Below, piece after piece: positions 20,468 to 52,601 of a stretch of 64,000 nt of DNA (the first letter of the stretch is position 1; each line of letters opens with the position of its first letter). The stretch lies in the sequence record NC_014636.1, one strand, 5' to 3'. A program made the translations under genes and the position numbers. The notes beneath the pieces are model-generated. The model made no database searches, was not told the origin of the DNA, and saw nothing but the letters and a program-made list of their open reading frames with translations.

Positions 20468-20680
20468 ATGTCAACATCAATGTTTAACTCTGATCATATC
20501 TCTACCCTGATCGCGGAACGGATTTTGAATAAGTCCCCTGAGCAGAAGAGACAAGAGCAGCTTGCAGAAGCTAAGGCGCTCAATGAGAGACGTTTGGAAG
20601 ACGGCATCGTCAAGACCCGTGCATTCCTATCAACTCTTAGTGAAGATCAACGCCAACGCTTCCTAAGCAGCATCCGATAA
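20468..20680 (+). CDS. 70-aa helical hypothetical protein co-transcribed with gp24
   Basis: RBS aaggaa; ATG at 20468; followed by terminator. Confidence 0.65.
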   Translation: MSTSMFNSDHISTLIAERILNKSPEQKRQEQLAEAKALNERRLEDGIVKTRAFLSTLSEDQRQRFLSSIR

Positions 20681-20710
20681 AAAAGCCCGTCAATAATGAC
20701 GGGCTTTTTT
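20680..20710. terminator. Bidirectional terminator at late/early boundary
   Basis: AAAAAAGCCCGTCA-ATAA-TGACGGGCTTTTTT. Confidence 0.9.
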
Positions 20711-21048
20711 TACATCAAGGTATTCACGATTGATACAAACATTTCATCTTTGATTTTTTGCTCGAACGGAAGATCTTCGTAGTCAACTAAACAAGGATGA
20801 GTTTTCAGTTTAAAATCTTTGACTTCTCCATATTTCCAGCCGTTTTCTATCTGGACACGTTTCCAACATTCATGAGATTCTGCTGGAGTTCTATCTGGAT
20901 TTGCCATGATTTCTTTTACACCGATTATGCTTGAATTCCTCTGTGCCTCTTCGGCATCTTCCCAATGCTTAATTGAGTTATCGCCAAGCAACAGACAATA
21001 AATCCGATTCATTTCGTGGCATACCCGGGCAATTTGTTCAGCTTTCAT
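20710..21048 (-). CDS. RyR (ryanodine-receptor repeat) domain protein
   Basis: SHECW..QIENGWKYGEVKDFKLKTHPCLVDYEDLPFEQKIKD fits the RyR-domain pattern H..W......GW.YG..KD...KTHP.LVPY..LP...K..D. Confidence 0.85.
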   Translation of the reverse strand: MKAEQIARVCHEMNRIYCLLLGDNSIKHWEDAEEAQRNSSIIGVKEIMANPDRTPAESHECWKRVQIENGWKYGEVKDFKLKTHPCLVDYEDLPFEQKIKDEMFVSIVNTLM

Positions 21049-21085
21049 TTCTAAATTCCTTCTTATAGTTATTACCTACAAGTAT

Positions 21086-21649
21086 TTATTCAAGAAATGA
21101 GCCTAGGTCCCGACGTTCCAGCTTATATTCGATATCCGGTACGTTAATACCGAACTTATTGCAAAACTTTTCCATATTCTGCTTGTGTAGCAAATTGAAA
21201 ACCGGTATTCCGTTTCGTTTTGCCAATGTGACTGCCGTTCTAGTTCCACCCTGAACTATCTTATTTCTTTCTTCCGCATAGCAGATCACCATATCGCTTG
21301 GTGTTTTGAGATCTCTCCCTAGTACCTGATATGCATTGCGAACATGCAACCATTGCGAGTAGAAATCTAGATATTCAAAATGAGGCAATATACGCTTGAC
21401 CATTTCTTCCGCTTCGAAGAAGTTTTCTAACTTGGTAACGTTTATTCCCTCTGGATACTTATCGTCCGGTCGATATATTTCGGCTAGTTCTGGATCGTAA
21501 TAACGCATCCATTCATAATCCATGCCTATCGCTCGTCCTGAGCGACCTATCCATCTCCTCTTTGAGAATTCACTGCCGATTTGATTTACTGCTGGGAGAA
21601 TGATCTTGGGTGGGTATCTCGTTCCCACCAGGGTTACAATTTTTCTCAT
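21086..21649 (-). CDS. SLOG (DprA/Smf/LOG-like) nucleotide-binding fold protein
   Basis: LVGTR, GRSGRAIGMD, HVRNAYQVLG, MVICY, GGTRTAVTLAKRNGIPVFNL. Confidence 0.8.
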   Translation of the reverse strand: MRKIVTLVGTRYPPKIILPAVNQIGSEFSKRRWIGRSGRAIGMDYEWMRYYDPELAEIYRPDDKYPEGINVTKLENFFEAEEMVKRILPHFEYLDFYSQWLHVRNAYQVLGRDLKTPSDMVICYAEERNKIVQGGTRTAVTLAKRNGIPVFNLLHKQNMEKFCNKFGINVPDIEYKLERRDLGSFLE

Positions 21650-21752
21650 GACACGATTGACAGATTATCACCTCGATATTGAATTGATCCATGTTGACTT
21701 TAGCAGAAGCGGTGCCTTCATCGACACCGCAGATATCACACACGTATTCCAA
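21570..21752 (-). CDS. Small Zn-finger protein (CDIC..CQSC), TTG start
   Basis: Two CxxC pairs, RBS aagga; overlaps SLOG gene start by 80 nt. Confidence 0.45.
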   Translation of the reverse strand: MEYVCDICGVDEGTASAKVNMDQFNIEVIICQSCHEKNCNPGGNEIPTQDHSPSSKSNRQ

Positions 21753-21754
21753 TG

Positions 21755-22885
21755 TTAATCCTTGATTTTGCAGCGAGTCAGAACAGTTTGTTTTGTGCCC
21801 TTATATTCGCTATGTTCTTTGACAGTGCCGGTAATCTCAAACTTATCACCAGCTTCATAGTTGTATGCACCACTTGCAAACCAAGTGAATACGTTGCCAT
21901 CTTTGGTTACCATGGTAATTGCAGAGGAGCAACCATAGAAAGTGTCAAACACACGACAGGAAACAACAGTTACCTCTATGTTACGGAGACGTTCGCCAAC
22001 GTTGCCAACGTGATTGGATTCGATTTTGACGCTTTCCTTTGCTTTGCGCTCAATATCACGAAGATAGCAATAAACAGCAGAGGTAGCGATGCCAAACGCT
22101 TTTGGAGAGACGTCTCCGTTTTTAGCGATCTGCTTTACGTTAGCAGCGTAAGAGCCATCGCCAAACGGCTCGATATTTTCCATGAAAGAGATAACGTCCG
22201 CAACTTTGCTTTCGTACTCTGACACACAATCACCCACTCGAATCTCGGAGCGTGGATTACCGAACACATTGGCAACAACATGCTTTGTCGGCATTGCGTC
22301 ATAGTCGTTTTTGTTGTAGCCGTATGTTTTGATTGCATACATGGCAACACAAATCACGCTAGCCAAGTCCTGGTATACTACTTGATTGAAGCCACCGCGA
22401 AGCTCTCCATCATCCATATTGTTCAGCTCGTCGAAAAAGCTTACCAGATTTGATGGTTTAGCGTGACCCATGTAGTTTTTCAGACAAGATCCGCCGACTT
22501 GCAGGTATTCTTTACCGTCGGTGACGATGAAAGTATTTGCACGATACCGATTGGTATTGCAGTGGTCGCAACGACATTTCAGGTCAATTGCTGCCGAGAA
22601 CTTAGCTGGCAGAGGACGAACGGAGTAGATCAGGTTTTCTTCGTGATCGATTTTTGCAACAAAGGACCAGTCGCCGATCATCTTCGGTGCATCGCCAATG
22701 ATTTCGATGATCATGGACTTGTAGTGACCGATTTTCATGCCATTATCGTCGATGATATCTACCAGTTCGGTTTTCACGATTTCATAAGTCGGAGCGGGTA
22801 CACCCAGCTTACCAGCGATTTTTGCCAGTTTAGCCATTTTCTCTTCGAACTTACCCATGAAAACTTCATCAACACGAATAGTCAT
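21755..22885 (-). CDS. Hypothetical protein with CDHC Zn-site and C-terminal OB-fold-like domain
   Basis: CRCDHCNTNRYR; C-terminal VGNVGER...ITGTVKEHSEYKGTKQTVLTRC; RBS GAGGAAG and own promoter. Confidence 0.7.
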   Translation of the reverse strand: MTIRVDEVFMGKFEEKMAKLAKIAGKLGVPAPTYEIVKTELVDIIDDNGMKIGHYKSMIIEIIGDAPKMIGDWSFVAKIDHEENLIYSVRPLPAKFSAAIDLKCRCDHCNTNRYRANTFIVTDGKEYLQVGGSCLKNYMGHAKPSNLVSFFDELNNMDDGELRGGFNQVVYQDLASVICVAMYAIKTYGYNKNDYDAMPTKHVVANVFGNPRSEIRVGDCVSEYESKVADVISFMENIEPFGDGSYAANVKQIAKNGDVSPKAFGIATSAVYCYLRDIERKAKESVKIESNHVGNVGERLRNIEVTVVSCRVFDTFYGCSSAITMVTKDGNVFTWFASGAYNYEAGDKFEITGTVKEHSEYKGTKQTVLTRCKIKD

Positions 22886-22905: not shown

Positions 22906-22943
22906 TATGTGGGCCATTATACAGACCCACATATTACAGTCAA
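22906..22943 (-). promoter_or_regulatory. sigma70-type early promoter with inverted repeat enclosing -10
   Basis: TTGACT-N16-TATAAT; arms TATGTGGG (22906-13) and CCCACATA (22926-33). Confidence 0.75.
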
Positions 22944-23126: not shown

Positions 23127-23525
23127 TTAGCCCGCCAGTGCTGCCGCGAAAGCCATAGACATTGCAGTTTGCGGCTGTACCGGTTTCACAAAATTGGTAC
23201 GCTTTTCCTGCTTCTTAACCGGAGTGTAAGTCCACACTTTACGACGCTGCACTACCTTCACCGGGATTTCAACCGATTCTGTCGGATACACTCGATTATT
23301 ACCGTTAACCACATCGGTTTTCATTACCGGGATTTCAACGGTATCGGCAGCTTCGTTGTCCTCGTCGATCACGGTGATTGTCTTAGCAGCGACGCGAGCG
23401 GCTTCCACTTCTTTGATCCAGCGAGATACGGTACTTGCGGATACGTTGAGTTCGCGAGCGATTTGTGCCTTGGAGGTGCCATTTTCGTTCATGAAATGGG
23501 CTTTGATCTTGGTAGCGTTAGTCAT
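23127..23525 (-). CDS. HTH DNA-binding protein (paralogue 1)
   Basis: SKAQIARELNVSASTVSRW. Confidence 0.8.
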   Translation of the reverse strand: MTNATKIKAHFMNENGTSKAQIARELNVSASTVSRWIKEVEAARVAAKTITVIDEDNEAADTVEIPVMKTDVVNGNNRVYPTESVEIPVKVVQRRKVWTYTPVKKQEKRTNFVKPVQPQTAMSMAFAAALAG

Positions 23526-23550: not shown

Positions 23551-23778
23551 TTAAGCGGCTTTCTTCGGATTGTTGTATACGTACTTGGCACGACGCTGAA
23601 CTTTACCAGCAAACTGAGCTTCCAGTTTAGCAGCCACTTGTTCACGACGCATTTCATTAACTTTGTCCATGTAGCGACCAACAGTGCGAGGGGAGACATT
23701 CAGCTCGCGAGCAACTTGAGCTTTGGTTTTGTTGGCGGCGGTAACTGCGAAGTAGGCTTTGATTTCGACGTTTTGCAT
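23551..23778 (-). CDS. HTH DNA-binding protein (paralogue 2)
   Basis: TKAQVARELNVSPRTVGRY; RBS GAGGAA. Confidence 0.8.
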   Translation of the reverse strand: MQNVEIKAYFAVTAANKTKAQVARELNVSPRTVGRYMDKVNEMRREQVAAKLEAQFAGKVQRRAKYVYNNPKKAA

Positions 23779-51548: not shown

Positions 51549-52601
51549 TTAAATGCCTGTGAAATACTGAATGATTTCATAATGATCATCAAAGAAGTTG
51601 TGACGATTGCGGCGTACCATGTGCATTGGCATCCAGAATACATCGCGAACTTCATCGCGCGGCTTAACCGCTGGCAGTTTACCATCAGCATCGGGTTGCA
51701 GTTCGATATACAGAGCCAGAGTCGGTTTGCAGATCGGATAGCTACGTCCCGGATAGTCGAAAATCTTCTCTTTCTTGACCGAACCACGAATTACGCGCTC
51801 CGGCACTTTAAGACGTACTTCCTCGCGCAGTTCGCGAATCGCACATTCTTTATAGGTCTCGTCTTCATTCTTGTGACCACCAGGCAGTGCATACGCACCC
51901 AAACCAGGAAGATTACCACGAATTGTAACGAGCAGGTGACCATTGCAAGTAACGACGGCATCACCAGTAGAGCAGTTCAGAGCCTCACGATATGGATACG
52001 CTTCCATCTTCTTGAGTTCTTTTTTGTTGTGCTGATGTTCTTTAGCCAGTCGATTGTATTCTTCTGCTTTCTTGACTTTGTAGGATTTCAGCCAAGCAAT
52101 CACACCCGGAGTAACGATCTCGCTGTGCAGACTTTCAAAGTCAAATGCAGGATCAAAGAAAGAATCACGGATGAAAGTTGCACTGATCGGCTTACCGTTG
52201 TGCATCTGACATTCGATCTCAGTCAGTTCCCAGCCAAAAGTCTCCAGCCACCAACTGTTCTTGTCTTTCTTGTTACCAACCATGGTGATCTTGTCGCCCA
52301 TTTGTTCGTCTACCGCGTCGCGGATATCAGCTTGCCAACGTTCGTTGGTGTAATTGCTGTCATCCACATAACGGAAGTATACATCGTTCGGATTCAGACC
52401 GTAGTCTTTCATCGCGACACGAAGCATTGCCTCACGTTCAGCAGGACGGAATGGGTTTTTCATATTCGGAAACGCATTCGCAGAACCCAGGATGATGTAT
52501 ACCTTTTGTGCAACGCTCATTGCAACGCGAATCATTTCCAGATGGCCGATGTGGTTGATTTGATACCGACCGTTTACTACAGCTTTGTCATACATTTTCA
52601 T
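51549..52601 (-). CDS. Bifunctional NMN adenylyltransferase / Nudix (ADP-ribose) hydrolase, NadM-Nudix/NatV type
   Basis: GRYQINHIGH (HxGH), KNPF; Nudix box GGHKNEDETYKECAIRELREEV; FFDDHYEII. Confidence 0.92.
   Translation of the reverse strand: MKMYDKAVVNGRYQINHIGHLEMIRVAMSVAQKVYIILGSANAFPNMKNPFRPAEREAMLRVAMKDYGLNPNDVYFRYVDDSNYTNERWQADIRDAVDEQMGDKITMVGNKKDKNSWWLETFGWELTEIECQMHNGKPISATFIRDSFFDPAFDFESLHSEIVTPGVIAWLKSYKVKKAEEYNRLAKEHQHNKKELKKMEAYPYREALNCSTGDAVVTCNGHLLVTIRGNLPGLGAYALPGGHKNEDETYKECAIRELREEVRLKVPERVIRGSVKKEKIFDYPGRSYPICKPTLALYIELQPDADGKLPAVKPRDEVRDVFWMPMHMVRRNRHNFFDDHYEIIQYFTGI

Follow-up and report, generated by a model that had tools for sequence, protein, structure and literature searches.

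RyDEP entered the literature in May 2026, when a preprint described gp78 of the Mycobacterium phage DyoEdafos as a glycosidase built on an RyR domain (PMC13232231). Its gene is located within a NARP1 operon, and the family named after it disarms the alarm signal of the bacterial Thoeris system (PMC13232231, preprint). This article is concerned with a relative of that protein in Aeromonas phage phiAS5, a T4-like member of the Straboviridae (Chrysonvirus) whose host is Aeromonas salmonicida, and with the SLOG-fold gene that stands directly before it. Both genes lie in the first 64 kb of the phiAS5 genome (NC_014636.1); the whole of this stretch is called the window below; it agrees with the record at 100% identity, and its coordinates are those of the genome. 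The evidence leans, although not heavily, towards two independent counter-defence genes that both act on molecules of bacterial immunity derived from nicotinamide adenine dinucleotide (NAD+).

The RyDEP family is not uniform. When eight other phage homologues were studied, six bound the signals and none cleaved them (PMC13232231, preprint). Two homologues, from a Ruegeria phage and a Pectobacterium phage, are nanomolar sponges that block Thoeris, and the one called H7 binds 2'/3'-cyclic ADP-ribose (2'/3'cADPR) at nanomolar affinity without cleaving it and blocks type I Thoeris (PMC13232231). As for the operons, NARP1 takes in accessory enzymes by which unusual products of NAD+ are converted to ADP-ribose (10.64898/2026.01.28.702374), and both RyDEP and a Macro phosphatase are encoded by accessory genes inside NARP1 operons (PMC13232231; 10.64898/2026.01.28.702374). 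SLOG domains had come into the same field from another side: in its account of the viral SLOG domains, the work of Iyer, Burroughs, Anantharaman and Aravind (2022) predicted that they sense or degrade cADPR-type molecules and that they combine with Macro and NADAR domains (PMC9503650).

Under the reading favoured here, a transcription unit that runs leftwards beside head gene 24, and that is probably early, would have the SLOG and RyR genes as its final two cistrons. The RyR protein, as a member of the RyDEP family, would be a sponge rather than a glycosidase for cADPR signals, while the SLOG protein would bind or process an ADP-ribose-type nucleotide, which might be another immune signal or a product of NAD+ breakdown.

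The RyR protein and the RyDEP family

The RyR gene encodes a protein of 112 aa, which scores 44.6 bits against the Pfam family RyR (PF02026; E = 1.8e-11), above the cut-off of 27.4. It matches the Protein Data Bank structure of RyDEP complexed with 3'cADPR (PDB 35TM, chain 35tm_A) at E = 2.1e-13, and BLASTP aligns it to DyoEdafos gp78 with 35% identity over 81 aa (E = 4e-18). Residues H75, W78, H100 and D117 of RyDEP, which touch the ligand or carry out catalysis, correspond to H59, W62, H84 and D101 of the phiAS5 protein, all four being retained. These positions are conserved well beyond phiAS5: among 99 RyR family members H59 and W62 are invariant, while H84 is found in 98 and D101 in 95. 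By its sequence, then, the protein of 112 aa belongs to the RyDEP family, and with it a T4-like Aeromonas phage clade enters this newly described group.

Does the phiAS5 protein cut the signal or merely hold it? Its closest informative relative is the RyR domain of the Pectobacterium phage protein CB1_68, to which it is 50% identical over 104 aa. CB1_68 is itself probably a close counterpart of H7, judging from equal length and near-identical termini and not from a full alignment. Because identity is much higher to this sponge-type homologue than to the lone known glycosidase, overall similarity makes sequestration more likely than cleavage. Hydrolysis to ADP-ribose may instead take place, the catalytic His/Asp pair being kept; sponge-type and glycosidase-type members share the same four residues, and the sequence therefore cannot separate the two activities.

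The RyR proteins of the Aeromonas straboviruses are of three types, with 23-37% identity between types. That of phiAS5 is closer to the RyR proteins of unrelated phages (53-59% identity) than to the type found in phage CC2. The genes of phages CC2 and 65.2, and that of Ahp1, have strongly diverged (L009:4594-4938, L180:3047-3424 and L179:3000-3437). CC2 and 65.2 carry a Tyr at the position of D101, the catalytic Asp, while the Ahp1 protein has an Arg in place of H84, the phosphate-binding His, and has lost D101; in 65.2 and Ahp1 the gene is also under-annotated, being recorded as too short. Three diverged types at one slot, two of them without the catalytic Asp, thus offer a natural series for comparing cleavage with sequestration.

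The SLOG protein and the genes around its relatives

The gene that precedes the RyR gene encodes 187 aa. Its product matches PHROG 768 (“DprA-like DNA recombination-mediator protein”) over residues 2-170 at E = 1.8e-56. An AlphaFold2 model based on 88 relatives reaches a predicted local distance difference test score (pLDDT) of 94.9, and Foldseek relates it, with a probability of about 1.0, to DprA, the Moco carrier protein, ShosA, TM1055 and the SLOG domain of ThsA, at query-based TM-scores (TMq) of 0.41-0.56. The fold, a Rossmann-like one in three layers, is that of the SLOG superfamily, the best match being Helicobacter pylori DprA (TMq 0.56, 16% identity). The glycine-rich loops typical of SLOG, behind the early strands and ahead of the late helix, are present: G38, D44, R104, G134 and G135 are invariant in the phiAS5 family, and G9, R11, S37, A40, G42 and T136 are nearly so in the 88 relatives. 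As modelled, the protein is a SLOG-superfamily domain unlike any solved member. Its family is very large, with 2586 clusters in a search of 1.84 billion representatives, most of them stand-alone proteins of about 180 aa, and with members in 1305 phage records (tblastn); a search of a viral fold library likewise found the SLOG fold to be common in phages.

The PHROG name suggests a first explanation, namely that the phiAS5 protein binds single-stranded DNA in the manner of DprA and so assists phage recombination or replication, that it has nothing to do with the RyR protein, and that the two genes are neighbours by accident in a variable region. A role as additional single-stranded DNA binders has indeed been proposed for phage DprA/Smf-like proteins (Iyer et al. 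2021, PMC7824862). DprA proteins head the list from Foldseek, a match between the family profile and DprA chains covers the first 50 residues (E = 1e-4), and Pfam DNA_processg_A, although below threshold, is the best Pfam match. One relative adjoins a Dda-like helicase, another precedes a superfamily 1 (SF1) helicase domain in a protein of 3112 aa, and in phiAS5 the gene upstream, ORF24, has a possible oligonucleotide-binding (OB) fold and a Cys/His cluster. Lastly, the SLOG gene stays beside gene 24 with or without the RyR gene. The resemblance, however, fails by the measures that define DprA. The scores are below both curated cut-offs (18.1 against 29.6 bits for PF02481, 12.5 against 191 bits for TIGR00732), and the DprA models align only to about the first 45 residues (3-46). 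TM-scores to DprA are about 0.55 at 16% identity, and the protein is a single domain of 187 aa lacking the flanking domains of DprA, where the matched solved DprA chains have 213-382 residues. The NADAR and DUF4326 fusions and the NARP1, Macro and NADAR neighbourhoods described below are also hard to reconcile with DNA binding. On the whole, a DprA-like role appears doubtful.

Several other identities were considered and rejected. The family of the LOG-type nucleotide N-glycosidases (Pfam Lysine_decarbox) does not appear among the matches listed up to E = 1, and with LOG-like structures (the Moco carrier protein, TM1055) the likeness is confined to the fold, at 13-18% identity. There is no match to the YspA/YAcAr SLOG family (PF10686), the fold match to the ThsA-type SLOG is weak, and an NCBIfam search returned nothing useful. 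DyoEdafos has a “DprA-like” protein of its own, gp89 (L007:20387-20803), encoded 5 kb downstream of RyDEP and near genes for a single-stranded DNA-binding protein (SSB) and an RNA ligase; it belongs to the YAcAr SLOG family (E = 1e-10) and is barely alignable with the phiAS5 protein.

Another conceivable role is mimicry of ShosA, the antitoxin of the ShosTA defence and itself DprA-like, by which the protein would silence the ShosT toxin during infection. A weak PADLOC match (PDLC03961, E = 0.003) and a Foldseek match to 8zva (E = 1.5e-3, TMq 0.51) point that way. The former covers residues 3-44 only, with no full-length match, and the latter has a target-based TM-score (TMt) of 0.33; both are limited to the common Rossmann-like core, for which DprA and the Moco carrier protein score better. 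Moreover, ShosA dimerisation and its binding of single-stranded DNA and RecA use regions that are missing from the 187-aa protein, and no contextual tie to ShosT-like genes was seen. Such mimicry is very improbable.

Instead of the features of DprA, the family has the company of NARP1, Macro, NADAR and RyDEP genes. A fused NADAR domain occurs in two of the longer relatives (P0139, P0149) and a DUF4326 in two (P0117, P0041), while one has two further SLOG domains together with NADAR. To examine neighbouring genes, the best-scoring 80 loci were taken per search from sub-group alignments, and the counts that follow describe these samples rather than a census of whole families; a locus search with the single SLOG sequence gave four close relatives only. 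NARP1 was defined as Adps plus Namat, searched for with DyoEdafos gp77 and gp79, no more than 10 kb away and on the same strand. The pair is present in 12 of the 80 viral SLOG loci, which fall into 5 of the 61 clusters formed at 70% identity and represent at least three arrangements, and it is absent from the control RyR loci (0/80 viral, 0/60 genomic). Fisher's test gives p = 3e-4 on loci and p = 0.06 once clusters are collapsed (5/61 against 0/53), and the link is therefore taken as suggestive.

The arrangements themselves are compact. In one locus (L113, 9998-13123) SLOG, Adps and Namat are contiguous, the SLOG gene abutting Adps. In another (L123, 4913-10576), from a cluster of seven loci that resemble one another and are linked to NARP1, a single strand carries Adps, an unassigned open reading frame (ORF), Namat, Macro, a small ORF and SLOG. 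NADAR adjoins the SLOG gene in two further loci, L127 among them. Fusions and neighbours together suggest that the SLOG protein binds or processes an ADP-ribose-type nucleotide, and this half of the locus agrees with the prediction published for viral SLOG domains (PMC9503650). The contexts also fit the uptake of accessory enzymes by NARP1 operons (10.64898/2026.01.28.702374).

The SLOG half is the more useful lead, its very large family being routinely annotated as “DprA-like recombination mediator”. Should these proteins act on molecules derived from NAD+, a common annotation error would be put right, and the NAD+-centred arms race between phages and bacteria would gain a new participant. 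A bolder proposal can be put forward tentatively: the SLOG proteins of PHROG 768 might form a widespread new class of counter-defence proteins, which would bind or cleave an NAD+-derived immune molecule left untouched by RyDEP, the Macro phosphatases and the sponges known so far, and which would be kept together with a RyDEP-type gene in the Aeromonas straboviruses as a two-layer anti-TIR cassette.

The pair and its transcription unit

A SLOG gene followed by an RyR gene is found beside gene 24 in phiAS5, phiWae14, Aeh1 (Cinqassovirus), Ah1, avDM12-TAAL and PX29 (Angelvirus). The same order recurs in AsFcp_1, AsFcp_2, AsFcp_4, CC2 (Ceceduovirus), 65.2 (Ishigurovirus) and Ahp1, so that the two genes are adjacent in every Aeromonas strabovirus examined. 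Elsewhere they part company. Among the 80 viral RyR loci, a SLOG gene lies within 10 kb in only three, all of them from Aeromonas straboviruses (phiAS5, Ah1, PX29); none of the other 77, and none of the 60 genomic RyR loci, has a SLOG gene nearby, nor does an RyR gene occur near SLOG in any of the 80 viral SLOG loci. The straboviruses GEC-3S and PM2 (Krischvirus, Mosugukvirus) have a SLOG gene at the same site without an RyR gene, and Yersinia phage TG1 and N4-like Pectobacterium phages have an RyR gene elsewhere without SLOG. One metagenomic RyR gene sits between ribonucleotide reductase genes.

It is because pairing is wanting outside the Aeromonas straboviruses, and because each gene is also found alone, that independence is preferred. 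The initial annotation inferred a two-gene system, and an obligate one is not supported. The neighbourhood survey that it called for did recover pairing throughout the Aeromonas straboviruses and none beyond, which goes part of the way towards the lack of co-occurrence outside the lineage that it had itself named as evidence to the contrary. Within the clade the pair is old, given the divergence between phiAS5 and CC2: identity is 44% for gp24 (head vertex protein), 42% for SLOG and 34% for RyR.

An obligate pathway can nevertheless be imagined, in which the RyR protein opens 2'/3'cADPR to ADP-ribose and the SLOG protein acts on the product, or on the adenine-ribose bond of the signal. The signal would then be destroyed for good or fed into the rebuilding of NAD+ by phage salvage enzymes. 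Such a scheme accords with adjacency in all 12 named Aeromonas straboviruses, which has been kept despite three RyR types and the divergence of gp24 just given, and with the catalytic pair retained in phiAS5. In the source's treatment of viral SLOG proteins, an attack on the ribosyl-adenine bonds of cADPR-type molecules was proposed (PMC9503650), and phiAS5 does encode NAMPT and NMNAT-Nudix. The pairing counts outside the clade and the lone SLOG genes of Krischvirus and Mosugukvirus nonetheless speak against it, as does the fact that CC2, 65.2 and Ahp1 keep the pairing with an RyR protein that has no catalytic Asp. The lone catalytic RyDEP known is a distant relative (35% identity), and inherited gene order accounts for adjacency equally well. 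An obligate pathway is thus unlikely.

Nor are the salvage genes close by. The NMNAT-Nudix gene (51549-52601, minus strand), annotated as “cytidyltransferase”, encodes nucleotidyltransferase and Nudix domains and lies 30 kb from the pair. The NAMPT gene (163859-165301 of the genome, beyond the window) lies 143 kb from the pair and 112 kb from the NMNAT-Nudix gene. Together they look like the two activities of a NARP2-type route, split; a search of the 64-kb window gave no NAMPT, Adps or Namat gene. The suggestion that the pair feeds the phage NAD salvage route therefore finds no linkage to rest upon. What largely endures of the initial annotation is its broader idea of NAD-derived immune nucleotides, through the RyR protein, which is now a member of a described family with its residues kept, and through the contexts of SLOG; the dedicated pair and the tie to salvage do not.

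Several points weigh against two independent counter-defence genes. Two of the eight RyDEP homologues did not bind signals, and the source is a preprint (PMC13232231). The NARP1 link is weaker on clusters than on loci. DprA proteins, the best structural matches of SLOG, bind single-stranded DNA, some SLOG relatives are beside or fused to SF1 helicases, and ORF24 has a possible OB-fold, all of which fits a DNA-related role. Finally, adjacency that persists across lineages in which gp24 is only 44% identical could reflect cooperation rather than independence.

In phiAS5, the two genes are found in the variable region that immediately follows head genes 23 and 24 on their downstream side, and transcription runs from the pair towards these head genes. 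The features of the site are as follows.

22916-22943, minus strand: sigma-70-like promoter, TTGACT-16 nt-TATAAT, 11 of 12 consensus positions (a consensus match only)
21755-22885, minus strand: ORF24, 376 aa, phrog_2319 (PHROG E = 8.8e-116), predicted first gene of the unit
21570-21752, minus strand: ORF23, a putative gene of 60 aa, TTG start, CxxC...CxxC motif (ORF listing and RefSeq annotation)
21086-21649, minus strand: stand-alone SLOG-fold gene, 187 aa (PHROG 768 match, AlphaFold2 and Foldseek)
21049-21085, minus strand: spacer of 37 nt between the SLOG and RyR genes (sequence reading and consensus scan)
20710-21048, minus strand: stand-alone RyR (R12)-domain gene, 112 aa, RyDEP family member (Pfam PF02026)
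20679-20710, both directions by its shape: intrinsic terminator hairpin (RNA folding and sequence)

Both ORFs are present where the initial annotation had placed them, and the strong terminator that it saw behind the pair stands up as well. In the hairpin, a G+C-rich stem of 8 bp with a loop of 4 nt stands between an A-run and a U-run, and the RyR stop codon runs into it. The hairpin folds at -21.8 kcal/mol (z = -4.9 relative to shuffled sequences, 1 of 200 of which was as stable), and it is not among the sites listed by the consensus scan. Its shape can suit termination of both convergent units. The spacer contains a Shine-Dalgarno-like AAGGA about 8 nt ahead of the RyR ATG, and the consensus scan found neither promoter nor terminator within it. 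At the other end, the promoter at 22943-22916, upstream of ORF24, is likely to be the start of the unit that ends in the SLOG and RyR genes, and the ORF24 ATG at 22885 is preceded by a good ribosome-binding site. No convincing terminator was seen between this promoter and 20710. The most likely leftward order is promoter, ORF24, ORF23, SLOG, RyR and terminator, and a single transcript for the SLOG and RyR genes, also proposed in the initial annotation, is what this arrangement suggests.

The promoter type alone would point to early expression of the unit. Sites for the T4 late-promoter consensus TATAAATA number zero in the whole 64 kb, against 2.1 expected by chance, and this absence is thus uninformative on the timing of the SLOG and RyR genes. 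The sites are wanting even though the window holds head genes, and the late promoters of phiAS5 may differ from the T4 consensus.

In RefSeq the SLOG gene begins at 21523 (145 aa), 126 nt later than the start at 21649 (187 aa) used here. The longer form is preferred because the PHROG 768 alignment begins at its residue 2, because G9, R11 and P14, which are nearly invariant in the family, fall within the 42 residues cut by the RefSeq start, and because Aeh1, PX29 and CC2 have full-length homologues. ORF23 shares its last 80 nt, read in a different frame, with the 5' end of the SLOG gene. ORF23 has no family match in Pfam or PHROG searches, and in Aeh1 and PX29 the ORF24 homologue stops a few bases before the SLOG start, leaving no space for a counterpart.

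ORF24 itself has no Pfam family and belongs to a widespread phage family (306 relatives found) in which C106, H108, C109 and C134, the Cys/His cluster, are invariant. Its model (pLDDT 91) ends in a C-terminal beta-barrel with weak matches to OB-folds (SSB, PriB; E about 0.03-0.2) and gives no confident fold match. The gene is kept upstream of SLOG in Aeh1 and PX29, and probably also in Ahp1, where a gene of similar size lies at that position beside SLOG; CC2, 65.2, GEC-3S and PM2 have no ORF24 there.

Other small genes surround the unit. One of them, an unannotated ORF of 70 aa (20468-20680, plus strand), is placed between gene 24 and the terminator and converges on the RyR gene. Its product shares 77% identity with the annotated Aeh1p237, and PX29 has a gene of comparable size annotated at this position; the ORF is probably a real small gene omitted from the phiAS5 record. 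Just upstream of the unit promoter, two small helix-turn-helix proteins, ORF26 and ORF27, are encoded at 23127-23525 and 23551-23778 (minus strand); they have similar beginnings, and ORF26 also matches DUF2774.

Comparison with known systems

The phiAS5 RyR protein resembles DyoEdafos gp78 (35TM; PMC13232231) in being a small stand-alone phage protein with one RyR (PF02026) repeat and all four residues. It differs in that gp78 is a proven glycosidase inside a NARP1 operon, while the phiAS5 gene is known from its sequence and has no NARP1 nearby. The N-terminal half of the phiAS5 protein resembles the sponge-type group and not gp78. With H7 and CB1_68 the likeness lies in the RyR domain, half identical to that of CB1_68, and in the same conserved residues; these two proteins, however, reach 183 aa through an additional N-terminal domain of about 70 aa, where phiAS5 has the bare domain.

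As for the SLOG protein, it belongs to the same fold superfamily as the SLOG domain of ThsA from type I Thoeris (PDB 7UXS and others), which binds 3'cADPR. The distance is nevertheless considerable (E = 0.01, TMq 0.41-0.46, 9-13% identity), and ThsA is a host effector with a fused Sir2. DprA (5MLL, 4LJK, 3MAJ, 3UQZ) and ShosA (8ZVA) are the best structural matches and share the first strand-helix-strand-loop pattern, whereas the phiAS5 protein is below both curated cut-offs and without flanking domains, and the contexts of its family are NAD+/ADP-ribose genes, not competence or RecA genes.

A functional analogy may be drawn with Adpp, the Macro ADP-ribose-1''-phosphate phosphatase of NARP1-AP operons (10.64898/2026.01.28.702374), an accessory gene in or beside NARP1 whose product converts an unusual NAD+ breakdown product to ADP-ribose, as a NARP1-linked SLOG protein might do in its own way; the folds are unrelated, and the activity of the SLOG family is only predicted. 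That prediction was computational, and its account of viral SLOG domains leaves RyR domains unmentioned and holds neither the NARP1 linkage nor the RyR adjacency (PMC9503650). The features on which that account dwells, namely stand-alone phage SLOG proteins, NADAR fusions and Macro/NADAR neighbourhoods, are all recovered here.

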